IMG/VR virus record: IMGVR_UViG_3300046616_000314
Location: 124,001-188,000 of that record
Direction: 5' to 3' (one strand)
DNA length: 64,000 nt
The position numbers and the translations under genes are program-made. Positions 248 to 24,794 of the stretch are shown piece after piece. Below the pieces are notes generated by a model, which saw only the letters and a program-made list of their open reading frames with translations, was not told the DNA's origin and did not search any database. The first letter of the stretch is position 1, and the number at the start of each line of letters is the position of its first letter.

Positions 248-250
248 CCA

Positions 251-496
251 TTATTTATAGTGGAGTGCGAACGCCTCGTTAGCTAATCGTTTGGCTTCGA
301 CCATAGCATCTTCTTTGAGCAAGAACGTTTCGCCTACTGCATGTCTAGTCTCAGGCGAATGGATAACGTACGTGCGATTGCTCAGTTCAAGGACATCGAA
401 ACGAATACGAACATCGTCGTATTGTTCATCATTCTCGCGGTCGATTTCATCGGGGAAGACGTGCCAGTGATCGGCAATGGTATTGGGCGGAATCAT
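251..496 (-). CDS. hypothetical protein
   Basis: ORF MIPPNTIADHW...; ATGA overlap with upstream ORF. Confidence 0.5.
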   Translation of the reverse strand: MIPPNTIADHWHVFPDEIDRENDEQYDDVRIRFDVLELSNRTYVIHSPETRHAVGETFLLKEDAMVEAKRLANEAFALHYK

Positions 497-672
497 TCTG
501 GTGGAATCTCCTTGCATAACTCACTCAATTCATCAACGCTTTGAGATAAAACGTTAAACAGTTGATCTAAGCCCTTTTGATTTACATTATTCTTGAGAGC
601 TTCATTATATGCTTTTTGTGCAGCATCAACGGCGGCACTAGCATCAGATAATTTCAAAATAAAATTTGACAT
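493..672 (-). CDS. small helical hypothetical protein (59 aa, not in ORF track)
   Basis: Manual translation MSNFILKLSDASAAVDAAQKAYNEALK...EIPPE; fills the gap and overlaps the next start. Confidence 0.45.
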   Translation of the reverse strand: MSNFILKLSDASAAVDAAQKAYNEALKNNVNQKGLDQLFNVLSQSVDELSELCKEIPPE

Positions 673-846
673 ATATTAATCATATCGAAAAATTACCAAA
701 AATTCAATTTATTTCGCAACCTTTCATCCCGATCACGCACCAAAATTGTATGGACGCGGGGGATTCAGCCCGAATTGTCCATCATAATAGGTGAGCCTGT
801 CACAAACACCCTGGCTCGTCTCCTAATAGATGAAAGGAACCCAAAC

Positions 847-1059
847 ATGCAAATCCTAGAGCTTGATCCCGTGTGGACCCTGAACCTCAACACCAATGAC
901 CTTCGGCTCGTTTTAAAGGCTCTAGGAGGGCGTTTACGAGAGGATGACACCAAGGATGCATTCGACCTTGGAGAACGGCTCACAGAGGCTCGTATCAGCG
1001 TCACACGGTCGCGGCTGAAGGCTATCGACAAGCTAGAGGAAAACTTTCGTAAGCCTTGA
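847..1059 (+). CDS. hypothetical protein
   Basis: MQILELDPVW...; GAAAGGA RBS upstream. Confidence 0.6.
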   Translation: MQILELDPVWTLNLNTNDLRLVLKALGGRLREDDTKDAFDLGERLTEARISVTRSRLKAIDKLEENFRKP

Positions 1060-1083
1060 CAATTTACGGAATTTTGGTAGTCT
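1056..1083 (+). promoter_or_regulatory. sigma70-like promoter driving the 26-gene paralog array
   Basis: TTGACA-N16-TAGTCT with extended TG; ATG 6 nt after the -10 box. Confidence 0.6.
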
Positions 1084-1089
1084 GTTCGA

Positions 1090-1416
1090 ATGAACAAGGT
1101 GGAACTTCATCTTCTCGAAAAAAGCCGCTATGTGGCGCGACCAGGGAAACTCCTAAAGGACTTCCCTGATTGTGCCATTGTGGTGTTGGAGTATCGCATA
1201 TCGTTCTATCAAAATTTCGATATCGAGTCTGTTCACAACGAGATTACTAATCTGGTGATTGGTAAACTTGAAGGTAAATGGTCTCGGCGTAATCCTCATG
1301 GTTGGCAAGAACAACGTGAAATGGGTTACAATATCAGACAAACGTTCCTTTTCGAACGCGAAGAGGACGCGATGATGTTCAAAATTCTAACGAGTGTGCT
1401 CCCCTATGTTCAATAA
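1090..1416 (+). CDS. FxxEEDA-FKLKW family small protein
   Basis: C-terminal FLFEREEDAMMFKIL. Confidence 0.75.
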   Translation: MNKVELHLLEKSRYVARPGKLLKDFPDCAIVVLEYRISFYQNFDIESVHNEITNLVIGKLEGKWSRRNPHGWQEQREMGYNIRQTFLFEREEDAMMFKILTSVLPYVQ

Positions 1417-1867
1417 GCTGGTTGACATCGCGAAAGACGCTTGGAAAACGTTTCGGGAAGACGAGACGATTGCTCGTGTCAACGTGCGTGTGCCTGAGAA
1501 AATGGTCAGCACGGATCAAGATGTTCTCCAACTTCTGGCGCAACTTCGCACCACATGGCGTGCAAATATGGCGACTGGGGCTATTTCTCCTAACACACCG
1601 ATGCCAGTTCCACCGATTCCCGGTATCCACCGGAAGTCTTTCAACATCCAAGCGGGAAGCCAGCAGTCCAATCGCTATGGGCGCCCTGGCAATGCCTATG
1701 ATTGGGCTGAACCAGAAATTCTCGAATGGTTGCAAAAGACCTATCGCTATCCTGTCGTGTTGACCCGCTATTTCGACTACGGGACTCAGCAGCAAGAATA
1801 TCGCGTGACGTTCAAAACGGACGAACATGCGTCGCTGTTCATCCTGCGCTGGGTTGGCAATAAATGA
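1394..1867 (+). CDS. FxxEEDA-FKLKW family protein
   Basis: VTFKTDEHASLFILRW; true start may be slightly downstream. Confidence 0.7.
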   Translation: MCSPMFNKLVDIAKDAWKTFREDETIARVNVRVPEKMVSTDQDVLQLLAQLRTTWRANMATGAISPNTPMPVPPIPGIHRKSFNIQAGSQQSNRYGRPGNAYDWAEPEILEWLQKTYRYPVVLTRYFDYGTQQQEYRVTFKTDEHASLFILRWVGNK

Positions 1868-2109
1868 GCCATGAAATGCTCATAAAACACGCTCTGTTCG
1901 GTAAGGTGTGGTACCCGGTGATCTCTATGGAAGAGGACGTGGGCATACAACCGTCTATCAGCTTTCAAAATTGGGCGAAAAAACATATCGCGGGTTTCGA
2001 ATTGAAAATGATTAAGTGGACCGGTCCCGAACTGTCTTGGATCACTATCAAATTTGAAAACGAAGAAGATGCTTGCCTCTTCAAATTGAAATGGTGCAAC
2101 AATGCATGA
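1864..2109 (+). CDS. FxxEEDA-FKLKW family small protein
   Basis: IKFENEEDACLFKLKW. Confidence 0.75.
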   Translation: MSHEMLIKHALFGKVWYPVISMEEDVGIQPSISFQNWAKKHIAGFELKMIKWTGPELSWITIKFENEEDACLFKLKWCNNA

Positions 2110-2362
2110 GTTTGATTTGAAAGACTGTCATTGGGTTTGGCTACCGATTTCGGTACCGGGGGCTTCTCGTAAAATTGAGTGGCACGCCGACGTGCTTCCC
2201 TGGCTTAAAGCCAATCTGTCAGCCATACCGGATATTGATATGCGGATGTACGACAGGACCCTACCACCGAAGGCTGGTCAATTGAATTTCTGGCAAAAGG
2301 TTGCTTTCTTCGCTACTGAAGAAGACATGGTTGCATTCAAATTGAAGTATGGTGGCGCATGA
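2102..2362 (+). CDS. FxxEEDA-FKLKW family small protein
   Basis: FFATEEDMVAFKLKY. Confidence 0.75.
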   Translation: MHEFDLKDCHWVWLPISVPGASRKIEWHADVLPWLKANLSAIPDIDMRMYDRTLPPKAGQLNFWQKVAFFATEEDMVAFKLKYGGA

Positions 2363-2676
2363 ACCAATTGAGAGTTGTGCTGGAACGGTCGGACCAATTT
2401 CGTGTGTACGAATTCCGCGTAAAGAAAGGCATGTGGATCGGCAACGAAACCGATAGCCCCATTGTTTTCACCGCCGAAGCTGAAGAGTGGCTGACCGCGA
2501 ACAAAATCCGCGTCAAGAGTCTGGATTTGGAACTGGTTCCGCATCCCGAATTCCTGCGTCAAAAAGCCGCTGGTGAACTGGCTCCCGATTACACGGGTTC
2601 TGGTTTGTGGCGCCAAGCTGTCGTTCGTTTCTATTCCAAGAACGATGCAGCGATGTTCCGGCTGAAGTACGCATGA
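2359..2676 (+). CDS. FxxEEDA-FKLKW family small protein
   Basis: RFYSKNDAAMFRLKY. Confidence 0.75.
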   Translation: MNQLRVVLERSDQFRVYEFRVKKGMWIGNETDSPIVFTAEAEEWLTANKIRVKSLDLELVPHPEFLRQKAAGELAPDYTGSGLWRQAVVRFYSKNDAAMFRLKYA

Positions 2677-2891
2677 CATATGTCGCCACGTTTTTCATCG
2701 TAAACACGGATTATCGTGTAATACGTGCGAAAATGGGCGTGCCAGATTTCATGTCTTTCAGTGAAAAAATAAAAGAAGAATTCCCGTCTGCCTCTACTAC
2801 AAAATGGGTTTATCGTCATACGGCAGAATCGGGATTTCATGTGAGCATGTCTGAAGAAGACGGCATCATGTTTAGACTGAAGTATCTATGA
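2673..2891 (+). CDS. FxxEEDA-FKLKW family small protein
   Basis: MSEEDGIMFRLKY; ATGA overlap start. Confidence 0.7.
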   Translation: MTYVATFFIVNTDYRVIRAKMGVPDFMSFSEKIKEEFPSASTTKWVYRHTAESGFHVSMSEEDGIMFRLKYL

Positions 2892-3247
2892 CCGAACCGG
2901 ACTCAATCAATTCATCGTACTACAAATGGTATTACGTTTTTGCAGAACAACCCATGGGCATGACCGATCATTTTCTTAGAGCGACCCACAAGTTCAAGCA
3001 CGTGTGGACAGATCGCATTCTCCAAGGTCCAGCGGGCGCATATATTGAGCGTGGTTTCAACGATGAGATTCTTGCGTGGATGGAAGCAACGGGATTCGAA
3101 TGCTGGTTCGAAGAACGCATGAGATCGAACGATGAACTTCTCTATTATTCAGATGGTTCGCCCGTTCTGGTTCCGCGATTGGTTATCGTATTCCATTCGG
3201 ACGAAGATGCCGTATTGTTCAAAGTGAAGTGGATGATTGCGAAATGA
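2888..3247 (+). CDS. FxxEEDA-FKLKW family small protein
   Basis: VFHSDEDAVLFKVKW. Confidence 0.75.
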   Translation: MTEPDSINSSYYKWYYVFAEQPMGMTDHFLRATHKFKHVWTDRILQGPAGAYIERGFNDEILAWMEATGFECWFEERMRSNDELLYYSDGSPVLVPRLVIVFHSDEDAVLFKVKWMIAK

Positions 3248-3537
3248 GTGACGATTATATTGCGATCACCGATCACCGAACCGGAAACCTTATCGTTGGA
3301 TACGAGGCAACGTGTCAGTTTCAACGGGACAATCGGTTCCATGGAAACGTGACGTTTAAACCAGACATCAAAGAATGGATCGAAATGACCGGTTGCAAAT
3401 GCAAGATCGAGAAACAGTCGATCTCGCTTTTGAAACTCCAATATTCGGATGGCTCGCTGGTTAAGTCGAATCGTTGGGTGATTGCTTTCGGGTCAGCCGA
3501 AGATCGACTTCTTTTCAAGATTAAATGGAAAGTATGA
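3244..3537 (+). CDS. FxxEEDA-FKLKW family small protein
   Basis: AFGSAEDRLLFKIKW; shares YSDGS with previous ORF. Confidence 0.75.
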   Translation: MSDDYIAITDHRTGNLIVGYEATCQFQRDNRFHGNVTFKPDIKEWIEMTGCKCKIEKQSISLLKLQYSDGSLVKSNRWVIAFGSAEDRLLFKIKWKV

Positions 3538-3773
3538 GCAACTTCACCGACATCGATTTAAACGGTGCTCATTTTTTACGTGGCGGCTATAACGGTCGTG
3601 TGTTCGTAGAACATATGACAAATGGTTCCGTGTACTTCATGTACGATGTTGAAGATTGGTTGAAAAAGCAAGAAATCCATGCTACGATTTTCAATTCTCC
3701 AAGCGGTAGAATAGTGACAGTTAGGTTTTCCAACGACAGCGACGCGGCTCTGTTCAGATTGAAATGGCTATGA
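3534..3773 (+). CDS. FxxEEDA-FKLKW family small protein
   Basis: RFSNDSDAALFRLKWL. Confidence 0.75.
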   Translation: MSNFTDIDLNGAHFLRGGYNGRVFVEHMTNGSVYFMYDVEDWLKKQEIHATIFNSPSGRIVTVRFSNDSDAALFRLKWL

Positions 3774-4066
3774 GTATTACGATCTCACCTTCGACACGCA
3801 ACAAGCTGTTCTATCGGCTGTACTCGTCATCGTACGCCGAAGGGTTCTTGAGTTTCGACCGGGACCACACTGGATTGGTCACGGTCCTGAACCCAGATAT
3901 CGCCGAATGGTGTGAGGCGAACCTTGCGGCTGTTCCTCTGCCCTTCCACGATGGTCATCAAATGCTGTCGGATGGACCCGCTGCAAACTATCTGATCTTC
4001 AAGAACGAGGACGATATGTCTTTGTTTCATATGAAGTTTTCAGAGCGCAATACACCAAGACGATGA
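3770..4066 (+). CDS. FxxEEDA-FKLKW family small protein
   Basis: IFKNEDDMSLFHMKF. Confidence 0.75.
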   Translation: MSITISPSTRNKLFYRLYSSSYAEGFLSFDRDHTGLVTVLNPDIAEWCEANLAAVPLPFHDGHQMLSDGPAANYLIFKNEDDMSLFHMKFSERNTPRR

Positions 4067-4344
4067 ATTTGCTTTTTTGGCAGCGCAAATTTTCCGTTGG
4101 AATCAATTACGATTTCATGCTGGCGTACCTGTATCGCAGCGTGGGAAATCTGAACGATAAATTTTATCCCAAGCAAGAATTAGACACATGGTGGAAAAAG
4201 AATATTCCGTATTCTTTCAAAGCTACGATGTTAGGTTCGTGGGCTCGTCAGGCTTTGGGCGCCACAGATAGCAATATCGATGTTGTGGAAATTCTTTTTA
4301 AAACCGAAGCTGACGCATTAATGTTTCGGTTGAAATGGCTATGA
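4063..4344 (+). CDS. FxxEEDA-FKLKW family small protein
   Basis: LFKTEADALMFRLKWL. Confidence 0.75.
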   Translation: MNLLFWQRKFSVGINYDFMLAYLYRSVGNLNDKFYPKQELDTWWKKNIPYSFKATMLGSWARQALGATDSNIDVVEILFKTEADALMFRLKWL

Positions 4345-4604
4345 TTATTCCTTGGTGTTTTAAGCGTTATAAGCATTCGGTCAAAGTCGGTTATGATTTC
4401 GTATTGAAGAACCTGCGGCGGCGCCCGTTAGGCTATGGTGGCGGCTTTGTCCCTCAGTATGATCTAGAAATGTGGTGGTTCAAAAATATGCCATATCATT
4501 TCAGAGCAAAAATACTTGGCTCATGGGATGAAGCAATTACGACTGTAGAAATTCTATTCAAATCCGAAGAACACGCAATGCTGTTTAGGTTGAAATGGCT
4601 ATGA
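4341..4604 (+). CDS. FxxEEDA-FKLKW family small protein (close paralog of 4063-4344)
   Basis: LFKSEEHAMLFRLKWL. Confidence 0.75.
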   Translation: MIIPWCFKRYKHSVKVGYDFVLKNLRRRPLGYGGGFVPQYDLEMWWFKNMPYHFRAKILGSWDEAITTVEILFKSEEHAMLFRLKWL

Positions 4605-4942
4605 TTTTCGATCTCAAGGCACGGCGCAAGTATCCACATAGTTTCGTGGCGTATGATCATACGCTATCGGATCGATATTTTCTGTTGATTCATGACATCC
4701 GCGAGTATGTCAAGTCTCGGACTGACAATGCTTTTGTTGTTGATTCGCTACCTATGTACTTGCGACACTTTCCCAAAGCCATGCAACTACAGATGTTACA
4801 AACATGGGAAAAACAACGCGAGTCGTGGCAGCATAAGCACCCGATCAACACCACAAAATTTCAACTGAAAACCTATAACCGTTTCGTCGCTGCATTTGAG
4901 ACAGCCGATGATCTAGTCATGTTCAAACTCAAATGGCTCTAA
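4601..4942 (+). CDS. FxxEEDA-FKLKW family small protein
   Basis: AFETADDLVMFKLKWL. Confidence 0.75.
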   Translation: MIFDLKARRKYPHSFVAYDHTLSDRYFLLIHDIREYVKSRTDNAFVVDSLPMYLRHFPKAMQLQMLQTWEKQRESWQHKHPINTTKFQLKTYNRFVAAFETADDLVMFKLKWL

Positions 4943-5211
4943 GAGATTTCTTCTTCCCCTGGAAATATCCGCTCATCCTTTCCAACGACTTCATTGTGGA
5001 AAACGCGAGCGCGATGCGTGACGAAATTTGGTGGGCGCCAGAAATTCAGGAATGGCTTGACATTTCTATCCCTTCTGGTGTTAAATTGGTAAGGAAGAAA
5101 GAAAAGACGTTTATTGGTGGTTTGGGTCAGCGCATTACCAAACGTATCAACATCGTTTATTTCAAACGTGAAGAAGACCGTCTGATGTTCAAGTTGAAGT
5201 GGGCGAAATGA
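4933..5211 (+). CDS. FxxEEDA-FKLKW family small protein
   Basis: YFKREEDRLMFKLKW. Confidence 0.75.
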   Translation: MALRDFFFPWKYPLILSNDFIVENASAMRDEIWWAPEIQEWLDISIPSGVKLVRKKEKTFIGGLGQRITKRINIVYFKREEDRLMFKLKWAK

Positions 5212-5441
5212 AGATTTTTTGGAACATTATCCCGTATCGCCCCATGCTCGAAATGAAAGAGTCGTGGAAGGCAGACATGCGCGTCAAGCACGGGACGGCT
5301 GACGAGCTTCACGCAAAGTTGTCGGAATGGATCGAGTTTTCCATGCCGTATTCACCCCTCGCCAAAGAACATAAAGGCAAGGACTACCTTTGGTTCAAGA
5401 GTGATAAGCACGCGGCGGTCTTCAAACTTAAGTGGCTATAA
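5208..5441 (+). CDS. FxxEEDA-FKLKW family small protein
   Basis: WFKSDKHAAVFKLKWL. Confidence 0.75.
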   Translation: MKIFWNIIPYRPMLEMKESWKADMRVKHGTADELHAKLSEWIEFSMPYSPLAKEHKGKDYLWFKSDKHAAVFKLKWL

Positions 5442-5442
5442 T

Positions 5443-5763
5443 ATGATCAAATACTTACCTCGATTTTTTAAACTCAAGGTTCCTGCGAAATACATCAACA
5501 AGCGTTTTGCCAGAAACGTCCGTGATGCCCTGGAACAGACCTACGCGATTGCTTCGGGGCAAGCGAGCGTAGAAGACTACCTTCCCAATTGGGAAAACCG
5601 CGAGGTTGATTCGTGGTGTGAACGGCACTTCGGTTATATCCCCAAAATCAAGGCTACCGCTGTTCAATGGGAAACTCGTTTAGACGACGATTCGGGCGTC
5701 CGGTTCAGTACAAGTTTTCTAACTCCAACCCACGCTATGCTTTTCCGTTTAAGATGGCTATAG
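5443..5763 (+). CDS. FxxEEDA-FKLKW family small protein
   Basis: SFLTPTHAMLFRLRWL. Confidence 0.72.
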   Translation: MIKYLPRFFKLKVPAKYINKRFARNVRDALEQTYAIASGQASVEDYLPNWENREVDSWCERHFGYIPKIKATAVQWETRLDDDSGVRFSTSFLTPTHAMLFRLRWL

Positions 5764-5972
5764 CGTTCTGGCATCGGAGAACCAAGGTTTCGCCCAAATA
5801 CTTGATGGATTCAACCATGATGTTTTGGTGCCTGCATAATCTTGGTTACACCCCAGAACGGATGTACAAATCGGTTTTACTTGTTGGCGAAAAACTAGTA
5901 ACATCGGATTATCTGACGTTTAGAACGTCACGTGATCTATTTCTGTTTTCGGTGTGTGCGCTAGAAAAATGA
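5754..5972 (+). CDS. FxxEEDA-FKLKW family small protein (divergent)
   Basis: WC...GYxP and TFRTSRDLFLF. Confidence 0.62.
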   Translation: MAIAFWHRRTKVSPKYLMDSTMMFWCLHNLGYTPERMYKSVLLVGEKLVTSDYLTFRTSRDLFLFSVCALEK

Positions 5973-6253
5973 AACGCTTCCTACCCAAGTTCTACAGAGT
6001 AGACATTCCTCCGAAGATGGCTGGGGGTGCTTGGGTAGATTTGCCTTCGTCGCAACAACGATATTACTCAGTCTATTTCCATAACCCCGATATCCTCCAA
6101 TGGTGTGTTAGAGAACTGGGTTACGTTCCCGAACTGGTTCAACATGATCGCGGGCGGACGATTAGTGGTGGCTATACCCCTATCGTCTTCAATTATTATA
6201 TCAAGCTTGCCACCAAGCATGACGTTGTGATGTTCAAACTGAAATGGCTATAA
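5969..6253 (+). CDS. FxxEEDA-FKLKW family small protein
   Basis: WCVRELGYVP...ATKHDVVMFKLKWL. Confidence 0.75.
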   Translation: MKRFLPKFYRVDIPPKMAGGAWVDLPSSQQRYYSVYFHNPDILQWCVRELGYVPELVQHDRGRTISGGYTPIVFNYYIKLATKHDVVMFKLKWL

Positions 6254-6501
6254 TCCTCAGACCGATGGCTGACATGCCCGAAGATGGTACGGCAATTGCC
6301 GTCGTCTTCGATGATCTGATTCGCTTTGGTTCAGTCACAACGAATGCATCAGTGGTGAAATTCTTCGCGGATAACGCTTTCAATGAATGGTGTGACGCTA
6401 TGCTTTCGCGTCGTCCATATGTCCGCGACTCTCTGTATAGAGTTTGGTTTCAATTCGCCAATAGCGACGATGCCGCAATTTTCAAACTTACGTTCAAATA
6501 A
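6244..6501 (+). CDS. FxxEEDA-FKLKW family small protein
   Basis: QFANSDDAAIFKLTF. Confidence 0.75.
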   Translation: MAIILRPMADMPEDGTAIAVVFDDLIRFGSVTTNASVVKFFADNAFNEWCDAMLSRRPYVRDSLYRVWFQFANSDDAAIFKLTFK

Positions 6502-6860
6502 TGCCGAGTGCTCAATACATTAAGTGGCTGACGCCCGTTGAACCATTTGTTCATCGGGTTCCAGGGATCGTATCGTATCATCGGATGCTGTATCGGAAGA
6601 GTAATCCGCCGGTCGTGCCGCCCAAGTGCGCCAATACGTTTTATACGTATGCGGAAGACCGGCGGTTGGTGAATATTGCTCCGTTCATTGCTCCAAAGAT
6701 GGAAAGATGGTTGCAGGAGAAAACCGAAGGTAGATATTTCTTGGTCATGCGTAACAAGAACAACATTCTACCGGGTATCTATTTTGAAGATGAAAACGAT
6801 GCGGTCTATTTCGCATTGGCATGGAATACTAAGCAGAGACATCGACGTGAACACAGATAA
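6501..6860 (+). CDS. FxxEEDA-FKLKW family small protein
   Basis: YFEDENDAVYFALAW. Confidence 0.75.
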   Translation: MPSAQYIKWLTPVEPFVHRVPGIVSYHRMLYRKSNPPVVPPKCANTFYTYAEDRRLVNIAPFIAPKMERWLQEKTEGRYFLVMRNKNNILPGIYFEDENDAVYFALAWNTKQRHRREHR

Positions 6861-7140
6861 ATGGCGTTATGAATTCGATAAAGATAGGTGGTTCTCATCG
6901 CGTTATCACGGCAAGTATGAGAATTTCTCACTGATCGAAAAGCCACAAATCATGCAAGAAATAAAACTTAATGGTGGTGTTGTTTCAATCGATTGGGAGC
7001 GTATTGCCATATGGTGCCGGGATAAATTTGGCAAATTGCCACTGATCTTGACCCAAGGCGATTATCTAGGTATTGTGCTTCCAACGGACGAAGACGCCCT
7101 AATGTTTAGGCTCAAGTTCTCGGAATTGTTCAGTATATGA
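6847..7140 (+). CDS. FxxEEDA-FKLKW family small protein
   Basis: LPTDEDALMFRLKF; GTG start inferred. Confidence 0.68.
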   Translation: MNTDKWRYEFDKDRWFSSRYHGKYENFSLIEKPQIMQEIKLNGGVVSIDWERIAIWCRDKFGKLPLILTQGDYLGIVLPTDEDALMFRLKFSELFSI

Positions 7141-7493
7141 CTTCGAAAATCTTGGTTCACGTTAATAGACCAACACGAACCGCGATCCTTTCTAAGACTG
7201 ATAATTTCGCCTCTGAGGCGGATCGACCCGCCGTGCTTGATCCTGACTTCATTGACTGGTGTAAGACCACTCTACGGGGCTCCTGCGAAGCCGTGAAGGC
7301 ACGCATGGACCAATGCGGCGAGCTACCAGACGATTCTTTCACTAAGCGTCAGTTATGGTTCAATCAAGGCGCGCTGAATGCGAAGCCTCCGAATCCTCTG
7401 CATTGGTTTCATCGTCTGGTGCTGTATTTCGAATACGAAGAAGACGCCACCATGTTCCGTTTGAAGTGGAGCGTTCCCGAAAATGAGTTATAA
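7137..7493 (+). CDS. FxxEEDA-FKLKW family small protein
   Basis: YFEYEEDATMFRLKW. Confidence 0.75.
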   Translation: MTSKILVHVNRPTRTAILSKTDNFASEADRPAVLDPDFIDWCKTTLRGSCEAVKARMDQCGELPDDSFTKRQLWFNQGALNAKPPNPLHWFHRLVLYFEYEEDATMFRLKWSVPENEL

Positions 7494-7818
7494 CGTTCGT
7501 GGAATCGGCATAGTTACAGGCAGATCACTAACCGATAGGGATTGGAAGGGTGAGTGGAAGAACGTCGAAACTCTTCCGCCCTTTATTCTGTACCATTCGG
7601 GTCACTGGAAATATAGTTCCAAGATCGACTGGCAGGGTACTTTCATATGGTGTTCTGCGAACATCAAGAATTTCAGTGCCTTCGCCATCAGAACTGAATC
7701 ACTATCGGGTCCTAACGTTGGATGCCTGTCATTCGATACTGAAGAAGATCGCATGTTGTGCAGAATGAAATTTCCAGATTGGGATTTCATTCCGGCTGAT
7801 ATGGTGCTGCACACATGA
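7483..7818 (+). CDS. FxxEEDA-FKLKW family small protein
   Basis: SFDTEEDRMLCRMKF. Confidence 0.75.
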   Translation: MSYNVRGIGIVTGRSLTDRDWKGEWKNVETLPPFILYHSGHWKYSSKIDWQGTFIWCSANIKNFSAFAIRTESLSGPNVGCLSFDTEEDRMLCRMKFPDWDFIPADMVLHT

Positions 7819-8123
7819 GAATGCGTTACATCGTCCCAAGCGCGGCAGGAAACCGCCTAGTCTGGTATGGCGAATGGCTTAGGGTTTCTGCCGTTCCGCC
7901 GAATTCGCTCATTCTACCCACACAAAATGTGGCAGAGAGCGTTAATCTCGCACACTGGTTTGAATGCCAGAAATGGGCGAAGGAAAATTTTGGCTATTTC
8001 GAAACCTTCGGTCTCGATACAATAATAGTGCGCCAGTCGCCGCTTTGGGGCGCCCATTTCGAAACCGAAGATGACATGCTATTGTTCAAACTGAAATTCA
8101 ATCGATGGCAGATTTTCGAATGA
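7815..8123 (+). CDS. FxxEEDA-FKLKW family small protein
   Basis: HFETEDDMLLFKLKF. Confidence 0.75.
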   Translation: MRMRYIVPSAAGNRLVWYGEWLRVSAVPPNSLILPTQNVAESVNLAHWFECQKWAKENFGYFETFGLDTIIVRQSPLWGAHFETEDDMLLFKLKFNRWQIFE

Positions 8124-8452
8124 TTACCCGGCACGTTGCTCAACCAACGAAGAAACGTTGGCACAATACCGAACGGCAGTTCGTTCGCGTAAATGGGCAA
8201 GTGATCAAACACCTTTTACTAGATTGTGCCAGGAACCCGTATTTCTGGGTGCTAGTCGATATCATGCATTTTCAACCGTATGACGATACGTTTTGGTATG
8301 ACATGCTGCATTGGGGTAGCGAGAATTTTGAGAAGCAACCCGTGGTCCTGTTTCAGAATCATTATTCCGCTATTTTATTTTGCAGCGATGAAGACGCGCT
8401 GCTTTTTAAACTGAAATTCTCTGGGCGGTATACCGCGAGTATGAGCCAATGA
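8120..8452 (+). CDS. FxxEEDA-FKLKW family small protein
   Basis: LFCSDEDALLFKLKF. Confidence 0.75.
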   Translation: MITRHVAQPTKKRWHNTERQFVRVNGQVIKHLLLDCARNPYFWVLVDIMHFQPYDDTFWYDMLHWGSENFEKQPVVLFQNHYSAILFCSDEDALLFKLKFSGRYTASMSQ

Positions 8453-8778
8453 AAGGCGCAATCACATTATACTTTCGGGAGAGTCCCGAAGCGACGTGCT
8501 GGACCGTAAAGGATCGTGACAAATACGTCATGGTCAACGGTAAGACATTTCGCAATCTGGTAAAGGATTGCGTTAAGAATCCGTTTCCATATATCCTTAT
8601 CGATCATGACAAGCACATGGTTGATACGAATATTTGGAATGAAGTTCTGCCATGCACCAAATGGGAAAAATTTCCGACCATTTTGGCACAATGTCAGTTC
8701 ATCCTCGTGCTATTTCATAGCGAGGACGATGCCGTGATGTTCAAGATCATGTTCTCGAAATATTTTAAGGGAGAATAG
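8449..8778 (+). CDS. FxxEEDA-FKLKW family small protein (paralog of 8120-8452)
   Basis: LFHSEDDAVMFKIMF. Confidence 0.75.
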   Translation: MKGAITLYFRESPEATCWTVKDRDKYVMVNGKTFRNLVKDCVKNPFPYILIDHDKHMVDTNIWNEVLPCTKWEKFPTILAQCQFILVLFHSEDDAVMFKIMFSKYFKGE

Positions 8779-8780
8779 AA

Positions 8781-8944
8781 TGGTGCCGGTTGCAAGACTC
8801 GAACTCGCGACCTTCGGTTTTCCTTGATCCTCTAAGCTTTAGGCTCTCGGACCTTCAAAGGGGGAGAGACTTTCGTCTGCTCCCGCTTCAGTCAACTTAA
8901 TGACCTGTACAAAACCACTGCTCTACCAACTGAGCTAAACCGGC
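8781..8944 (-). tRNA. tRNA-Thr(UGU) with 88-nt insertion (putative intron) after position 37
   Basis: Reverse strand GCCGGTT-TA-GCTC-AGTTGGTA-GAGC-A-GTGGT-TT-TGT-A-[88 nt]-A-ACCGA-AGGTC-GCGAG-TTCGAGT-CTTGC-AACCGGC-ACCA; TATAAATA at 8963-8970 upstream. Confidence 0.88.
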
Positions 8945-8995
8945 GTACCGTTTCTATAATTATATTTATACTAAACTAATTTAGTCCTGTCAACA

Positions 8996-9238
8996 TCAAT
9001 CGACTTCGTTGCGACAAATTTTCACGATAGCCATGATGACGATGGAAACACCGAGAGCCGATACCAGTGCAATGATCGGATGGGTACACAACAACCCAAC
9101 GAATGCCAGGGCTCCGAAGAGAATCAGACCCACTAGAGCAAGTCCTACAAATAAGACTGCACCGATTGTTACGCATTCGACAGTGGATAGACGAAGGGCT
9201 TTAACAACCCGCTTGATATTTTGTAAGTTCATATCCAT
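8996..9238 (-). CDS. small membrane protein
   Basis: Two long hydrophobic segments. Confidence 0.6.
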   Translation of the reverse strand: MDMNLQNIKRVVKALRLSTVECVTIGAVLFVGLALVGLILFGALAFVGLLCTHPIIALVSALGVSIVIMAIVKICRNEVD

Positions 9239-9528
9239 TTGAGTTTAAAAAGGATTAGGGTATCGTCGTCAATGAATTCTAGGGCTAGACGCCATTCACG
9301 TCTTCCGTCTATCCCAAAATCTATAGTATCTAATTTTGGCACATATTTCAAATTTTCTTTACACCAATCGACAAAATTATCCGACAGAACAATAGCATTT
9401 GAACTGGTATGTGTTTTACCAGGGAATATTTTTGTCACGTCAACCACAAAGATGTCGTTGAACGGTGATCGCTTCTGATGATTTTCCGGCATGAACACAA
9501 AAACGGGCATTAGGTAGCTTTCAGCCAA
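9229..9528 (-). CDS. FxxEEDA-FKLKW family small protein
   Basis: WCKENL...EFIDDDTLILFKLKWI. Confidence 0.72.
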   Translation of the reverse strand: MAESYLMPVFVFMPENHQKRSPFNDIFVVDVTKIFPGKTHTSSNAIVLSDNFVDWCKENLKYVPKLDTIDFGIDGRREWRLALEFIDDDTLILFKLKWI

Positions 9529-9833
9529 TCATCGATAAAATCGGTTGCAAGGAAGGTGTCGGCGCCAAATTGGGCGTAACGCATCTTGAACATCGTTGCG
9601 TCCAGATCGGTTTCGAAACGAAGATGGAACACTTGGTTGCCGCCATTGTCATACTCTACAGTCGTCGTGGGGTATTTGATGCCCCTGCGGTCCATCCACA
9701 GTAGTACGGAGGTAATAAGATGGTATTCGCGAAAATGCTGTTTGGCTACCTCATCATAGGTCCATCGCCAGTCCAGCAATTGCTCACTACCGTTTTCGTT
9801 AGTCTCGTGAACCCTTACAACGGTATCAGCCAT
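9510..9833 (-). CDS. FxxEEDA-FKLKW family small protein
   Basis: RFETDLDATMFKMRY. Confidence 0.72.
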   Translation of the reverse strand: MADTVVRVHETNENGSEQLLDWRWTYDEVAKQHFREYHLITSVLLWMDRRGIKYPTTTVEYDNGGNQVFHLRFETDLDATMFKMRYAQFGADTFLATDFIDDWLKAT

Positions 9834-10129
9834 CAGAATTTCAACCTACAAAGCAGCATGGATTCTGCGGAGTCTAATTCAAGTAGGAGCTTACGGCAAA
9901 GCCCTTTATTGAAAATAGGTCGCAAGATTGGTGTAATTTCGTTGGCTTCACACCAACAGGTAAATTCCTCCGTCAGCCGAAATACCTCGATAACATTCAA
10001 ATGTCTACTCAGTCGCCCGCTTTTGGTTATTTTGAAGCCAGCCAAATGTTGTTTCGTGGGATCAAGTTCCCACACCTTGCTTCCAAGTTCGGATACATCC
10101 AACTCGTATTTCACAGTTTGTTTGCCCAA
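9833..10129 (-). CDS. FxxEEDA-FKLKW family small protein
   Basis: WCEAN...ELDSAESMLLCRLKF. Confidence 0.68.
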   Translation of the reverse strand: MGKQTVKYELDVSELGSKVWELDPTKQHLAGFKITKSGRLSRHLNVIEVFRLTEEFTCWCEANEITPILRPIFNKGLCRKLLLELDSAESMLLCRLKF

Positions 10130-10383
10130 TAGAGTTTGAACAGGGCTGCGCTATCGGTGTTGTCGAACACGATGAGAGGTTTCCACGTATTAACTTCCGC
10201 GTAGACCTTATTACCATCTGCCACGTGTTGGAAGGAATACCCGTTGACGCCATGCTGTTCGCACCATTTGACGAACGCTTGGGTAGGAAGAATGACGCGA
10301 TCATGTACGCGAGCCGCCCAAATTTCCCATCTAGAATTGAGAGTAAGGGCGATCTCGTTCACAAACGTTTCTCCGAAAACCAA
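10111..10383 (-). CDS. FxxEEDA-FKLKW family small protein
   Basis: WCEQHG...VFDNTDSAALFKLYW. Confidence 0.72.
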   Translation of the reverse strand: MVFGETFVNEIALTLNSRWEIWAARVHDRVILPTQAFVKWCEQHGVNGYSFQHVADGNKVYAEVNTWKPLIVFDNTDSAALFKLYWANKL

Positions 10384-10742
10384 GAAGGATAGGCGTTTAT
10401 AACACGTTTTTGAACAAATGCCATAAAATTACTACTAGAATCTCTGGAATTTCTGAACTGGAACGCTTGATCCTGAAGCGTTACTAACAGAGTGGAGTAT
10501 TCGAGTGCGATATCTTCATAGCTCGTATGGAAATCGTAGTTCTGGGTCAATACGATGATGGCAGCAATTAGATCACTATCATCCACGTGTTCGAATTCGC
10601 GGGGATCATATTCAATTTCTTTAAGAACAGCGTTCGCCAGAGCTTTGAAAGCGTTGCGATCATGTGGCTCTAAACGTTCAGAAAAACTCTCCATATGAGA
10701 ATGGAGTACACTAAGATGTTTCATACCAATACTTATTAACAA
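10359..10742 (-). CDS. hypothetical protein
   Basis: ORF embedded in the minus-strand array, lacks the family motif. Confidence 0.55.
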   Translation of the reverse strand: MLISIGMKHLSVLHSHMESFSERLEPHDRNAFKALANAVLKEIEYDPREFEHVDDSDLIAAIIVLTQNYDFHTSYEDIALEYSTLLVTLQDQAFQFRNSRDSSSNFMAFVQKRVINAYPSWFSEKRL

Positions 10743-10948
10743 AACTTCAATTTAAAATATACAATATCGTCTGGGTTAGTAAGTGTGACTTCGTATAGAA
10801 AGCTAGCAAGTTTAGATTGTCTATAGAAAGTATAGCGTTCTCTGAGAAATGCTCGAATACTAGACAAGCATTCGATTTGATCATAGAACAGAAAACGCCC
10901 CGGATCGGAGGGGCTTTCCCAAGCGCGTTCAACATCAATCATAACCAC
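10736..10948 (-). CDS. FxxEEDA-FKLKW family small protein
   Basis: TLTNPDDIVYFKLKF. Confidence 0.68.
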   Translation of the reverse strand: MVMIDVERAWESPSDPGRFLFYDQIECLSSIRAFLRERYTFYRQSKLASFLYEVTLTNPDDIVYFKLKFC

Positions 10949-11238
10949 TTCAACTTAAACAGCATGGCTTCTTCATCAGTCTCAAACCACATGGAAATGT
11001 GGTCGGGAAACATATCGTTTTGTGTGCGGCGGTTCATAGCAGTTTCGAGAAACGTCCGCCCGATTTCTCCATCACGTTTACGCTCGTTGAGCCATTCGTG
11101 AATTACGTCATCAATCATCGGATACCACAGACCATCGCGCCAGACGAACAGGAAGGCGGTTGTACACCCCGGTCCACCGTATGCGGCATGGTGGTGTTGT
11201 GGAATTTTCAGTTCATACACGTGAAATATACTCAGCAA
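10939..11238 (-). CDS. FxxEEDA-FKLKW family small protein
   Basis: WFETDEEAMLFKLKWL. Confidence 0.72.
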   Translation of the reverse strand: MLSIFHVYELKIPQHHHAAYGGPGCTTAFLFVWRDGLWYPMIDDVIHEWLNERKRDGEIGRTFLETAMNRRTQNDMFPDHISMWFETDEEAMLFKLKWL

Positions 11239-11491
11239 ATTTCAAACGGAATATGACTGCATCGTTATCCGAGACGAAACATGCGGCTGATCGAAACCGA
11301 TACGCGGCGGTAGACATGCTGCGTTCCATCGGTGATTCGTAAATAAAATCATAGCGATAATCTACGACTGCCAAATCTTCGGTTTGGGTTGCGCACCATG
11401 CTTCCATCGTCTGCCGGGCTTCGAAAGACAGAACCTTGTTTAGGATGATAGGCGTAAACCGTTTCCGATCTTTGTGCGCGTTTGGGTCCAT
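11213..11491 (-). CDS. FxxEEDA-FKLKW family small protein
   Basis: CFVSDNDAVIFRLKF. Confidence 0.72.
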   Translation of the reverse strand: MDPNAHKDRKRFTPIILNKVLSFEARQTMEAWCATQTEDLAVVDYRYDFIYESPMERSMSTAAYRFRSAACFVSDNDAVIFRLKFAEYISRV

Positions 11492-11569
11492 ATCTCACCA
11501 TACCTTAACGAAATTGAAATTGCAAATTTTCGTAGGGTTCGCTATGGTAAATCATTGATTGGAATTGAT

Positions 11570-11788
11570 ATGCTTATCTCGTTTGAAGAAATGAATGACT
11601 GCCACGAATTCACTGTGGATCACACCTTGATCGCGAAAATCGTCAAGGAACGTGTGTGCAACCATGACTATTGGGTCATCCACCCTCAAGAAGGGTTTTC
11701 GTTCCGTACTGTCGATAAGATGTCTCACCTGACAATCAAGGGTGCATTTGACATTTGCTGGAATGAATGGGTGAACTATGTGGACTGA
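11570..11788 (+). CDS. hypothetical protein
   Basis: ORF from internal ATG (MLISFEEM). Confidence 0.5.
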   Translation: MLISFEEMNDCHEFTVDHTLIAKIVKERVCNHDYWVIHPQEGFSFRTVDKMSHLTIKGAFDICWNEWVNYVD

Positions 11789-12059
11789 TCGTGACGGCAA
11801 CGAAATCGAAATCGAGACGATGAGCGACCGCTATTTGCTTAATGCGCAGCGATATGCGAAGGCGCGTCTCAAGAAAGTGCGCGAGCAACTGAAGGAAGCC
11901 CAACAGTTTTGGATGATGGTCCAGGGCGATCATGCAGAACGCGAACTTGAGCAACTGATTGAGCGTGGCGAAGATACCGTGTTCATGTTAGAAACCGGAA
12001 TGCGTAAGATGGAAGCTGTCATGCTGTCGCGCGGACTGTCACCGTTACCACAGGTCTAA
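11778..12059 (+). CDS. hypothetical phage protein with coiled coil
   Basis: WTDRDG...I..MSDRYLLN N-terminus resembling common phage hypotheticals. Confidence 0.65.
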   Translation: MWTDRDGNEIEIETMSDRYLLNAQRYAKARLKKVREQLKEAQQFWMMVQGDHAERELEQLIERGEDTVFMLETGMRKMEAVMLSRGLSPLPQV

Positions 12060-12060
12060 G

Positions 12061-12276
12061 ATGTTACATCGTATCCGACTAGGCTATGAAAAAACGTACG
12101 AATTGTCGGAATATGGCGCGCGGGGCGTGTTTAGGTATCTAACTCCCCACGTGGAAGAATGGTGTGAAGAAAACGAAGTCGATCTTCATAGCATCGAAGA
12201 CAATGACGATGACACCTACACCTTTAATTTTGTAGATAAAGACAGCGCGGCATTGTTTCGGTTCAAGTGGCTCTGA
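12061..12276 (+). CDS. FxxEEDA-FKLKW family small protein
   Basis: EEWCEEN...NFVDKDSAALFRFKWL. Confidence 0.75.
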   Translation: MLHRIRLGYEKTYELSEYGARGVFRYLTPHVEEWCEENEVDLHSIEDNDDDTYTFNFVDKDSAALFRFKWL

Positions 12277-12542
12277 TGTATGATTTAGACGTTGCTTATG
12301 ATTATGTTTTGCCGTTGGCGAGTTATGATGTTCATGCAAAAACTCGAATCATCAAGCCGCCTGTTGGCGATTGGTGCAAAGAGAATGGCATAGGCACACC
12401 TACTCTTTCTCATATCAAGGCGAACGTCAAACCGAACATGGAAGGTTCGTTTTATACGTTCACGTTTCAATCAGAAGATGATGCCGCCTTGTTCAAGTTG
12501 AAATGGCTGGCTAAAAATTTGAAGATTGACTTCGGACGATAA
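12276..12542 (+). CDS. FxxEEDA-FKLKW family small protein
   Basis: DWCKENG...TFQSEDDAALFKLKWL. Confidence 0.75.
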   Translation: MYDLDVAYDYVLPLASYDVHAKTRIIKPPVGDWCKENGIGTPTLSHIKANVKPNMEGSFYTFTFQSEDDAALFKLKWLAKNLKIDFGR

Positions 12543-12573
12543 CAGGTACATCGTGTCCGAAACGGAGATCGTT

Positions 12574-12759
12574 ATGCCTAGACTGACCAGTGCCGAGTAT
12601 CTTCGCGCCTACAAAGAAGGTCAGCAAGCTTTCGCCAACATGCTTCAGTGCAGCGATAACCCATACACCGCTCTCATGGATGACCAATTTTTCGGCTGGG
12701 AAAATGGTTGGGTTGACGATCAGCAAGCCGCCTGGGATAAACTGATAGAATCGTTTTAG
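12574..12759 (+). CDS. ribosome modulation factor (Rmf)-like small protein
   Basis: RAYKEGQQA...NPY...WENGW matches the Rmf-fold pattern; GGAG RBS. Confidence 0.5.
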   Translation: MPRLTSAEYLRAYKEGQQAFANMLQCSDNPYTALMDDQFFGWENGWVDDQQAAWDKLIESF

Positions 12760-13349
12760 TACAGACGAGATTTCTTTTTCGTATCTTTGTCTAAACGAAG
12801 TTTGGCGATCACTGCATCTTGTATTTGCTTGGCAGGCTTCCCGTCCACATAGAGTAATGGATGGTCAAAGATCGGAGAATATTGGTGTGGTCCATCAAAT
12901 TCTTCAGGATGATCAATATGATAGATGACGTGTTTCATCATTCTCTCATATTGGGTCATAACCATTTCTAAGCGAATGATATATCGACTCACGTTGTTGA
13001 TGGGTCCGATTACAAACTCTTCCGCTTCGGTATATTCGCCCTCGCGCGTGTATGGCGTAGGCTCGTAAAAACTCTTCTTCTCATCGGTGTCCCAGTAATC
13101 GACGGGCGAGATTTTGTAGTTGTGTGACAGGCGCCGTTGGTCCAGCACGAACACTACGGCTCCGAAACCATGGGCGATACGCGGGCTCCGCGACAGGCTT
13201 ACGCCATTAATGTCGTCCAAGTCCATGTTGGAATGGCTGGTTCGATCCGCCATTTTATTCTGTTTGAGAATGAGCAAAGCACCACCGAACGTCGTCCCAT
13301 GATACAGGGGCGCGTCTCGTCCTTCACATAGAATCTCATGAATAAACAT
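12756..13349 (-). CDS. ADP-ribosyltransferase-like protein, candidate capsid-packaged protein
   Basis: LYHGT...GVSLSRS...EAEEFV motif series; N-terminal MFIHEILCE leader; directly downstream of the neck gene. Confidence 0.55.
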   Translation of the reverse strand: MFIHEILCEGRDAPLYHGTTFGGALLILKQNKMADRTSHSNMDLDDINGVSLSRSPRIAHGFGAVVFVLDQRRLSHNYKISPVDYWDTDEKKSFYEPTPYTREGEYTEAEEFVIGPINNVSRYIIRLEMVMTQYERMMKHVIYHIDHPEEFDGPHQYSPIFDHPLLYVDGKPAKQIQDAVIAKLRLDKDTKKKSRLY

Positions 13350-14117
13350 TTAGCCGATTACGAAGCCATAGCCCATGTCGGAATCGATCAACTGAATGAT
13401 CTCTTGTTCCAGACGTTCCAGTTCGGATTGTGCTTCCGATTTTAGAGCGTCAGCGTTCATGGTGATACCACCTTGAGGACCGGCGAGGCTTTGGAACTTG
13501 CCACGGGCTTCAGCGATCATCAGCTTGCATTGCGCCAAGGCATAGTCACGAATCCACGGGCGAGCATATACGTCGTTGATGATGACTTCTTCAGGACGGG
13601 CGTTGTAGACGTGGACCATGATTTGCTCAACGTATGTAATCTTGCGTTGGATCGTCAGGCTCTTGGAATAGGTATCCCAAGTGTAAAGGATGTCGCGACC
13701 GAACATGCGACCAACAAGCTCTTGATATTGCATAGCAAAGTCGTAAGTGGCTAGCATACCTGCACCGCCGGTATCCATGCCACCTGGGTTGGAAATCATG
13801 TAGATGTTGTTGGTGAAAGCAAGGCTGAAGGGATCGATGGACGCGCCGCCAGCGGTGCCGCCGATGTTACGACGATACAGGGCGACGATGTTTTGAATTT
13901 CCTTCGGGAGAGTGTACTTGTTAACATCTGGTTGAGCATCGAAGAAGACGAAGCTCTCTTCAACGCTGTTACCCGAACGCTGACGATAGCGATCTAGGGC
14001 AAAGGTGATGGCAAGATTATACTCTTTATCTTCCAATTCAAGGTCAATCATGCCGCCGCCCAAACGGGTTTGAATTTCGTCAATCAATTGCGAGCGCGCA
14101 GTTACGTTATTAGCCAT
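13350..14117 (-). CDS. neck protein, T4 gp13-like
   Basis: LGGGMIDLEL, WIRDYALAQCK...KF...GGITMNAD, C-terminal FVIG pattern of gp13-like proteins; GATAAATA upstream. Confidence 0.8.
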   Translation of the reverse strand: MANNVTARSQLIDEIQTRLGGGMIDLELEDKEYNLAITFALDRYRQRSGNSVEESFVFFDAQPDVNKYTLPKEIQNIVALYRRNIGGTAGGASIDPFSLAFTNNIYMISNPGGMDTGGAGMLATYDFAMQYQELVGRMFGRDILYTWDTYSKSLTIQRKITYVEQIMVHVYNARPEEVIINDVYARPWIRDYALAQCKLMIAEARGKFQSLAGPQGGITMNADALKSEAQSELERLEQEIIQLIDSDMGYGFVIG

Positions 14118-14184
14118 GATAAATCCTCACCTTGTAAGGTATTTATCGGTTGACTTTCGTTTGGTAATTAACGAAAATACAAGC

Positions 14185-14641: not shown

Positions 14642-14669
14642 GACAGATGATCTAGCCATAAATAAACTT

Positions 14670-17805: not shown

Positions 17806-17874
17806 TTAAAATTACCTAAAAATTTATAATCCCATATTGCCAAATTGGGACAACGGAAGTCAATAAATAAACGC

Positions 17875-20204: not shown

Positions 20205-20211
20205 CTATTAT

Positions 20212-24774: not shown

Positions 24775-24794
24775 ACCTTTATTAGGTACATGAT

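Follow-up and report, generated by a model that had tools for sequence, protein, structure and literature searches.

A family of at least 275 small-protein genes arranged in head-to-tail arrays in a complete 561-kb soil phage genome

Family genes within the 64-kb window

The stretch of DNA analysed here (the window, 64,000 nucleotides) derives from the complete 561,116-bp genome of a T4-type rhizosphere phage related to Atu_ph07 and Phosso. In order to determine whether the window encodes an array of small proteins sharing one C-terminal motif, as claimed in an initial annotation, we listed its open reading frames and searched them with an iterated HMM. In total 46 members were identified in the window at E<=0.01, together with about 6 weaker, degenerate ORFs with a visible motif. 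These comprise 25 consecutive members plus one degenerate member in the main array, 7 members on the minus strand, 2 further members on the plus strand and 12 satellites (starting at 21380, 30221, 30481, 39767, 40093, 40461, 40793, 50788, 53055, 53291, 53641 and 58619). The observation made in the initial annotation is thus confirmed, although its scale (about 50 genes) was underestimated, since the family has at least 275 members in the whole genome. The features are as follows:

1056-1083 (+): candidate sigma70-like promoter (TTGACA-N16-TAGTCT), 6 nt before the first family start codon; a second candidate lies at 666-693
1090-8778 (+): main array of 26 head-to-tail family genes, 25 at E<=0.01 and a degenerate one at 5667-5972 (E 0.15)
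9229-10383 (-): four family genes (9229-9528, 9510-9833, 9833-10129, 10111-10383), E 1.7e-8 to 3e-4
10359-10742: 127-aa non-member ORF without a Pfam hit, separating the minus-strand blocks
10736-11491 (-): three family genes (10736-10948, 10939-11238, 11213-11491)
12061-12542 (+): two family genes, a minimal 71-aa member at 12061-12276 (E 5e-9) and the best-scoring member at 12267-12542 (E 1e-13)
21112-21628 (+): satellite pair, 21112-21390 (weak, E 0.019) and 21380-21628 (E 4.9e-4)
30221-31055 (-): satellite cluster, 30221-30481 (E 0.0057), 30481-30798 (E 2.3e-6) and the degenerate 30798-31055 (E 3.6)
32539-33253 (+): two weak, degenerate candidates with a visible C-terminal motif (E 0.23 and 0.071), of uncertain membership
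39767-41053 (+): satellite array of four genes (E 0.007, 0.0046, 0.0048 and 4e-8) immediately upstream of an RNA ligase gene (41112-42299)
50788-51018 (+): single member (E 5.5e-5)
53055-53925 (+): satellite array of three genes forming a subfamily that ends in F-[ML]-L-[YR]-W-K
58619-59119 (+): member with the core at residues 22-95 followed by a 70-residue tail, an exception to the C-terminal position of the core

The main array is nearly gapless, with 17 of its 25 junctions being ATGA stop/start overlaps. The initial annotation had placed this array behind a single sigma70-like promoter: whilst the candidate at 1056-1083 was recovered by a pattern scan, sigma70-like consensus hits are not enriched in the region (19 found against 23.5 expected), and hence a single promoter remains only plausible. 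A 37-nt match to tRNA-Thr inside a family gene is not a functional tRNA.

Extent, origin and selection of the family

Across the genome the 275 HMM hits compare with 0 hits among reversed ORF sequences, whilst the next largest paralogue group has 11 members. The family accounts for about 27% of the genes and 16% of the DNA (89 kb), in 19 arrays of 3 or more genes and up to 52 genes. The encoded proteins are small and soluble (median about 95 aa) and share a C-terminal core of about 55-60 residues, in which a Trp helix is followed by F-x-[STN]-E-E-D-A-x-x-F-K-L-K-W; the conserved positions are W (97%), F (84%), E/D (88%), D (63%), A (62%), F (91%), K/R (87%), L/M (88%), K/R (94%) and W/F/Y (98%). 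The spacing F-8-F is fixed in 257 of 273 members and the core ends within 3 residues of the C-terminus in 225 of 275, whilst the N-terminal and loop parts are variable and the N-terminal parts cannot be aligned between subfamilies. In more than half of the junctions the stop codon of one gene overlaps the start codon of the next, with this ATGA overlap lying inside the conserved K-W-L-stop codons.

Conservation acts on the protein rather than on the DNA: motif codons vary synonymously and there are no DNA repeats among members. The copies are old, as no pair exceeds about 49% identity. In the case of 52 members the best hit is the immediate neighbour (about 2 expected) and for 72 it lies within 3 genes (about 5 expected), which indicates tandem duplication. 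Copy number differs more than 100-fold among related phages, with about 2 copies in Atu_ph07, at least 43 in Phosso and 65 in another metagenomic phage (G003), and 245 of 264 members have their best hit within their own genome.

In order to analyse selection, orthologues were required. No stretch of the family alignment was conserved enough to search for related loci, and a degenerate DNA pattern for F-K-L-K-W-L-stop was used instead. One apparent syntenic relative (locus L009) proved to be the same phage at 100% identity, assembled from the source run, and could not serve as an orthologue; G003 is too distant for dS (core proteins about 48% identical), and the Phosso array region has no close counterpart in the phage collection searched. 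Fragments of a 95-100% identical relative in a freshwater metagenome showed 12 synonymous against 3 non-synonymous changes in the main array, and orthologues in IMG/VR loci gave a pN/pS of 0.10 for the C-terminal 40 aa and 0.15 for the rest. Individual copies are thus maintained by purifying selection, and the initial annotation's description of the proteins as hypervariable, and with it diversifying selection, is not supported.

These results bear on two alternative explanations. The variable N-terminal parts and the variation in copy number could suggest a cassette system actively diversified by a DGR-like or accordion-like process; however, the absence of template/variable DNA repeat pairs, the low pN/pS upstream of the core and the closest paralogues being only about 49% identical largely refute this. 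It also appears unlikely that the family is largely neutral or selfish filler, spread by unequal recombination at the conserved gene junction and padding the genome to fit an enlarged headful capsid. In support of this, the 89 kb roughly equals the size excess of this genome over Phosso and Atu_ph07 (470-490 kb), and the junction microhomology could favour unit-length duplication; against it stand the purifying selection on orthologues, the retention of the motif at the protein level through synonymous change in 275 copies and the lack of recent duplicates and of obvious pseudogenised runs.

Predicted fold and comparison with known families

The two members at 12061-12542, which have unrelated N-termini, were modelled using AlphaFold2. 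Both models exhibit the same predicted beta-beta-alpha-beta-beta-alpha topology, albeit with only moderate confidence (pLDDT 66 and 72). The core matches nothing in Pfam, PHROGs, NCBIfam or PADLOC, so that no known defence or anti-defence family was recovered in these libraries, and no description was found in the literature searched; amongst 132 members no Pfam family recurred at E<=1. A search with a single member found no homologue beyond itself among 5.8 billion clusters, and tblastn of the best member against cultured phages found nothing. Neighbours were virus-restricted. Three long representative hits (P0020, P0025 and P0096) were repeat-driven false positives, including HA-domain repeats with F-x-D-W-C.

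The initial annotation had inferred a resemblance to the RRM/ferredoxin-like fold. This resemblance is only generic: the best matches in PDB, AFDB and Atlas reach a Foldseek probability of at most 0.3, a TM of at most 0.52 and a Z of at most 4.2, no significant Foldseek or VIA match was obtained, and the order of elements differs from the beta-alpha-beta-beta-alpha-beta of this fold, although a circular permutation is not excluded. RNP1/RNP2 motifs and Pfam RRM or ACT hits are likewise absent. Small two-layer alpha/beta domains (ACT, PII/DUF2007, RRM) and the AbrB/SpoVT swapped hairpin are similar to the core in size and in the general packing of a four-stranded sheet with helices. In case of AbrB/MazE/SpoVT, the topology is compatible and natural two-core fusions occur in other phages (P0004 and P0040), with a Foldseek probability of at most 0.23 and no Pfam hit (PF04014). 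A PH/Ran-binding domain, a seven-stranded beta-sandwich capped by a C-terminal helix, is not supported: the models have four strands, and only a 25-residue local profile match to the last strand and helix of RanBD was found (E 0.005).

These weak topological similarities (AbrB/SpoVT, ACT, PII, KH and RRM models), together with the conserved K-x-K in the last helix and two-core fusions that recall MraZ-type pseudo-dimers, could point to a large set of nucleic-acid-binding regulators, acting as transcription or translation factors or as nucleoid proteins. We consider this unlikely, since all structural matches are non-significant, no RNP or AbrB sequence signatures are present, the median pI is 6.0 and 48% of members have a pI below 6. 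The pI distribution is bimodal and gives no support for a uniform DNA-mimic or nucleic-acid-binding role.

Promoter context and possible roles

A first 7-mer search upstream of the arrays found nothing, and the exact T4 late box TATAAATA is rare (20 in the genome) and absent upstream of arrays. A de novo k-mer search then identified a relaxed, late-type ATAAATA box, which fronts the terminase, two giant virion proteins and the neck gene. None of 64 family-dominated transcription units carries this box, against 42 of 360 others (Fisher p 0.001), whilst sigma70-like pairs precede 7 of 37 family units against 17 of 251 others (p 0.02). This suggests early, non-structural expression, although the inference rests on consensus motifs and on our crude gene and operon calls.

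The alternative that members are virion-associated (internal head, decoration or ejected proteins targeted into the very large capsid by the conserved core) could be drawn from the main array abutting the neck, virion-protein and tail-sheath module, and from the 131 proteins found in Atu_ph07 virions, most of which have no known function (PMC6102473). The accessions of the Atu_ph07 family members were not found in the text of the virion proteome supplement examined. This alternative seems unlikely given the absence of the late box, the fact that Atu_ph07 builds a comparable virion with only about 2 members, and the prediction that the conserved part is an integral helix of the fold rather than a free targeting peptide. 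T4 internal proteins share a cleavable N-terminal signal and are late and packaged, whilst here the constant part is a C-terminal domain, predicted to be folded; both cases nevertheless combine a constant segment with variable parts, in T4 internal proteins a shared capsid-targeting segment joined to variable cargo. T4-like genomes also contain hyperplastic regions and early "monkey-wrench" genes, i.e. clusters of many small, non-essential-looking genes, but T4 small early genes are mostly unrelated to each other.

Taken together, our analysis demonstrates a very large lineage-specific family that shares an undescribed alpha+beta core, lies in head-to-tail arrays, arose long ago by tandem duplication, is maintained by purifying selection and differs in copy number among relatives. 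That the arrays are expressed early or in the middle of infection rather than late, and are translated in a coupled way so that many different members are made together, is inferred. A weaker inference is that the constant core is a folding scaffold whose C-terminal helix, with an acidic N-terminal cap, a basic K-x-K end and two hydrophobic stripes, may also be a shared dimerisation or docking surface (the two-core fusions providing a hint of dimers), whilst the variable N-terminal extension and the Trp-to-Phe segment provide member-specific surfaces. Together these would form a repertoire of intracellular binders aimed at host or competitor proteins, for host takeover, anti-defence or inter-phage competition. 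This is our best, but tentative, explanation, reached without direct functional evidence from expression, interaction or informative domain fusions: the only fusion found is to DUF7448, itself of unknown function. Furthermore, purifying selection argues against an arms-race pattern at the time scales sampled, and the conserved residues are largely core-forming or helix-capping, so that a shared docking surface is not demonstrated. The interpretation in the initial annotation is thus partly supported: one family with a constant core and variable remaining parts, a shared predicted topology of two members, the lack of a description in four HMM libraries and in the literature searched, and the differing array content of relatives all hold, whilst a binder library docking on one partner remains a reasonable hypothesis, for which the lack of the late box is the only indirect support.

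A more far-reaching possibility, which we regard as unlikely but not excluded, is a combinatorial adaptor repertoire, in which hundreds of scaffold-sharing proteins would use the conserved C-terminal helix to pair with each other or to dock on one common machine (a protease, a polymerase or another phage or host hub), with each variable surface recognising a different host defence or takeover target. This would be a bacteriophage counterpart of the expanded F-box, BTB or ankyrin adaptor families of giant eukaryotic viruses, and its expansion would be what pushed this lineage to a 561-kb genome.

Multigene families of large eukaryotic DNA viruses (ASFV MGF110/360/505, poxvirus ankyrin/BTB families, pandoravirus and mimivirus paralogue expansions) likewise form tandem paralogue arrays that make up a sizeable fraction of a giant viral genome and vary in copy number between relatives, and are usually linked to host range or immune evasion; here, however, the virus is a bacteriophage, the proteins are much smaller (70-130 aa), the domain is unknown and no recent "accordion" copies are present. 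Phage anti-defence clusters (anti-CRISPR and anti-restriction loci) also encode small, mostly ORFan-like, clustered and probably early proteins that vary between related phages, but anti-defence proteins are not known to share one scaffold and occur as a few genes rather than hundreds. Should the members be anti-defence or host-takeover binders, this would be by far the largest such repertoire known in a phage. A single undescribed domain here accounts for about a quarter of the genes of a complete genome that is larger than that of any cultured phage known to us. This suggests that phage gigantism in this clade is driven by amplification of one gene family, as in giant eukaryotic viruses; the 89 kb of the family roughly equals the size difference from its relatives. 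The family also defines a new domain of about 60 residues with hundreds of natural variants on one scaffold, each kept by selection, and its presence in the cultured Phosso, which infects Sinorhizobium meliloti, makes its function directly testable. The largest phage gene-family expansion that we found described is a Zn-ribbon family of ~35 copies in Bacillus phage G, termed "unprecedented" (Iyer et al. 2021, PMC7824862), in which one small domain of unknown function is likewise amplified within one giant phage genome. In comparison, the family reported here has about 8 times more copies, a predicted alpha+beta fold with no metal ligands and long arrays with inferred translational coupling, and is shared with, and differentially expanded in, related phages.

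Extent and organisation of the gene family

In order to establish the extent of the family, we first listed the ORFs of positions 1–13500 of the window, which revealed a tiling of short ORFs ending in variants of F-x-[ST]-E-E-D-A-x-x-F-K-L-K-W. An HMM was then built from regular-expression seeds and iterated over all ORFs of the genome, where it converged on 275 ORFs at E<=0.01, of which 261 have E<=1e-3 and 195 have E<=1e-5; the same search performed on reversed ORF sequences gave 0 hits. Within the window, 46 ORFs pass E<=0.01 and about 6 more carry a degenerate motif, which matches the count of about 50 given in the initial annotation: the array that it described is real. The main + strand run comprises 25 clear members plus a decayed one at 5667–5972, with seven members following on the - strand and two at 12061–12542.

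The window corresponds to positions 124001–188000 of a single 561,116-bp contig, an IMG/JGI virus record from a rhizosphere metagenome. The contig ends (1–187 and 560930–561116) overlap by 187 bp at 99.5% identity, and hence the genome appears to be complete; at 561 kb it is larger than that of Atu_ph07 (490 kb) and also larger than that of Bacillus phage G (about 498 kb). The neck protein encoded next to the array is about 47% identical to those of Sinorhizobium phage Phosso (469 kb), which infects S. meliloti, and Agrobacterium phage Atu_ph07, which places the phage among the T4-related "group 2.2" jumbo phages (PMC7824862).

The family covers 89 kb, or 15.9% of the genome, and forms 19 arrays of 3 or more genes, the largest having 52 consecutive genes at genome positions 371,751–386,480. 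Based upon a crude gene call it accounts for about 27% of roughly 980 genes, with a median length of 97 aa, whilst the next largest paralogue group has only 11 members (median 291 aa). This second group is represented in the window by a 197-aa ORF (12756–13349, - strand) that lies between the array and the neck gene, contains an L-Y-H-G-T-T motif and has no Pfam or PHROG hit. In the case of the main family, 107 of 196 intra-array junctions are ATGA overlaps, as are 17 of 25 in the main array of the window. The junction consensus is ..TTC AAG CTG AAA TGG CTA TGA: the last base of the final Leu codon and the stop codon together form the ATG of the next gene, and a second in-frame ATG lies inside AAATGG. 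The cassette boundary is therefore written into the conserved codons, and we infer that successive genes are probably translationally coupled.

Sequence core and predicted fold

Profile conservation defines two elements within the proteins. The first is a semi-conserved Trp followed by [IV]-x-E-x-x-W(97%)-C-x-x-[NH], and the second, which follows a variable segment, is [YF]-x-[ILV]-x-F(84%)-x-[STN]-[ED]-[ED]-D-A-x-x-F(91%)-[KR]-[LM]-[KR]-[WFY]. The core ends within 3 residues of the C-terminus in 225 of 275 members and the F-to-F spacing is fixed in 257 of 273 members, whilst the Trp-to-Phe distance ranges from 8 to 69 residues and the part before the Trp from 16 to 275; variation therefore sits in the N-terminal extension and one internal segment. 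AlphaFold2 models of two members with unrelated N-termini (pLDDT 72 and 66) exhibit the same order, beta-beta-alpha-beta-beta-alpha, with the Trp in helix 1 and the E-E-D-A..F-K-L-K-W stretch forming helix 2. By helical-wheel reasoning, helix 2 is inferred to have an S/T-x-x-E capping box, two hydrophobic stripes (A/F/W and L/L), an acidic start and a basic end, a pattern that would suit antiparallel helix pairing. Natural two-core fusions found in other phages (the representative proteins P0004 and P0040) fit a dimerising domain, although this remains a prediction from sequence and monomer models.

Comparison with known families did not identify the core. No hit was obtained in Pfam or PHROGs for 10 members, no family recurred when 132 members were scanned individually against Pfam and PHROGs, and NCBIfam and PADLOC also gave nothing. 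A profile search of PDB sequences gave only a 25-residue local match to the last strand and helix of Ran-binding domains (E 0.005), which we read as a convergent strand/acidic-cap/helix motif. Foldseek searches against PDB, BFVD and AFDB clusters gave nothing significant, and neither did VIA-align against PDB representatives and the ESM Atlas: the best real neighbours are uncharacterised viral proteins, with ACT, PII/DUF2007, RRM, KH and AbrB/SpoVT appearing only at TM up to about 0.5, probability up to 0.3 and Z up to 4.2. The RRM/ferredoxin-like fold proposed in the initial annotation is therefore a generic resemblance only; a role of the members as nucleic-acid-binding regulators is one of the rival explanations that we considered. 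Literature searches for the motif, for phage multigene families and for the relatives found no description of the family. One member (genome 285619–286242, outside the window) carries an N-terminal DUF7448/phrog_2650 domain fused to the family core; the DUF7448 part alone is widespread, without the core, in Bacillus SPO1-like, Burkholderia BcepSauron-like and other large phages.

Duplication history and selection

Motif codons differ synonymously among copies and the genome has no DNA-level repeats among members. The only sizeable internal DNA repeat of the genome is an inverted pair of about 600 bp at 71% identity (genome 479310–479908 and 495043–495644, outside the window), which lies in a region with paralogous large genes. 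The best paralogue hit has a median of 35% identity and never exceeds about 49% over full length. Best hits are strongly enriched among neighbours, with 52 adjacent and 72 within three genes against about 5 expected, and the arrays therefore grew by tandem duplication long ago.

In order to place these copies among other phages, we performed an exhaustive profile search, which found 657 representatives among 1.84 billion proteins; a substantial share of these are this genome's own copies (8 of the 10 top hits checked). Phosso has at least 43 members and Atu_ph07 about 2, whilst an IMG/VR relative (G003, a 415-kb fragment whose core proteins are about 48% identical) has 65, and smaller fragments of other jumbo phages carry clusters of 5–10. 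Of 264 members in the present genome, 245 have their closest relative within this genome, although a few have true orthologues in G003, Phosso and Atu_ph07, for example the pair at genome 192,878–193,575. The family is thus ancestral at low copy in the clade and expanded independently and to very different extents. The neighbourhood of the single ancestral-type family member in Atu_ph07 (RnlA and the vWA/MoxR pair) is also found in the window, where two RNA ligase genes and a MoxR-like AAA+ ATPase lie at 31115–32191, 41112–42299 and 45429–47507.

A freshwater metagenome contains low-coverage fragments that are 95–100% identical to this rhizosphere phage over window positions 1000–6900, and hence close relatives occur in a different habitat. 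Of 15 substitutions within family ORFs, 12 are synonymous third-position changes and only two codons change. Orthologous members also occur among IMG/VR loci at 81–93% nucleotide identity, with a pN/pS of about 0.10 in the C-terminal 40 residues and about 0.15 upstream; these are uncorrected counts and some of the comparisons are non-independent. The genes are real and each copy is conserved, an observation that argues against the rival view of the family as neutral filler. The N-terminal parts are different between paralogues but are not being diversified at the time scales sampled, and the further rival of a hypervariable cassette system is largely refuted here. The interpretation offered in the initial annotation, of a hypervariable library of binders on a constant RRM/ferredoxin-like scaffold, is only partly supported.

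One family gene (7815–8123) contains, on the opposite strand to the coding gene, a 37-nt stretch (7909–7945) that is 97% identical to the 5' half (D-arm and anticodon arm, anticodon UGU) of tRNA-Thr of Rhizobium phages RHph_X2_28B and X3_15. As ARAGORN and Rfam do not call a tRNA there, it looks like a tRNA-gene fossil overprinted by a family gene.

Candidate promoters and inferred function

In order to gain insight into the timing of expression, we performed a de novo k-mer search of intergenic DNA, which found an ATAAATA box that is enriched about 20-fold and typically lies 25–35 nt before start codons. The box precedes the large terminase, two giant virion structural proteins and the neck gene, and in the window it also lies just before or at the annotated starts of the virion-protein (14670) and tail-sheath (17845) genes. 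It resembles the T4 late promoter TATAAATA, of which it is a relaxed version, and probably marks the late promoters of this phage clade. The boxes noted in the window, which lie a few to about 30 nt before the starts of the neck, virion-protein, tail-sheath and other genes, together with one within the convergent gap, are:

14140–14146 (-), ATAAATA box
14658–14664 (+), ATAAATA box
17863–17869 (+), ATAAATA box
20209–20215 (-), ATAAATA box
30222–30228 (-), ATAAATA box
39719–39725 (-), ATAAATA box
57502–57508 (+), ATAAATA box
60701–60707 (+), ATAAATA box
8963–8969 (-), ATAAATA box pointing from the convergent gap back into the 3' end of the + strand array, which, if active, would give a late antisense transcript over the end of the array

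None of 64 family-dominated transcription units has the box, against 42 of 360 family-free units (p 0.001). Sigma70-like TTGAC-N16-19-TAnnnT pairs, on the other hand, precede 7 of 37 family units against 17 of 251 others (p 0.02), and one such pair (TTGACA-N16-TAGTCT) lies at 1056–1083, directly before the first gene of the main array. Whilst dependent on our crude operon calls, this argues for early or middle, non-structural expression, and against the rival explanation of the members as virion-associated proteins.

Taken together, we are highly confident that this is a real, very large, lineage-specific multigene family built on an undescribed small alpha+beta domain. The family's size, arrangement, divergence and conservation rest on direct comparison of sequences, whereas translational coupling, helix pairing, the timing of expression and any function are inferred. 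As to function, we commit only tentatively: we favour a co-expressed repertoire of intracellular binders for host takeover, anti-defence or inter-phage competition, with a constant scaffold and member-specific surfaces. The 89 kb occupied by the family roughly equals the size excess of this genome over its 470–490-kb relatives, and we infer that expansion of this family may be what made this phage so large.

Beyond the family, the window contains five tRNA genes scattered among structural and RNA-repair genes:

19275–19351, tRNA-Met
24698–24968, cluster of tRNA-Glu, tRNA-Gly and tRNA-Glu
62315–62389, tRNA-Cys
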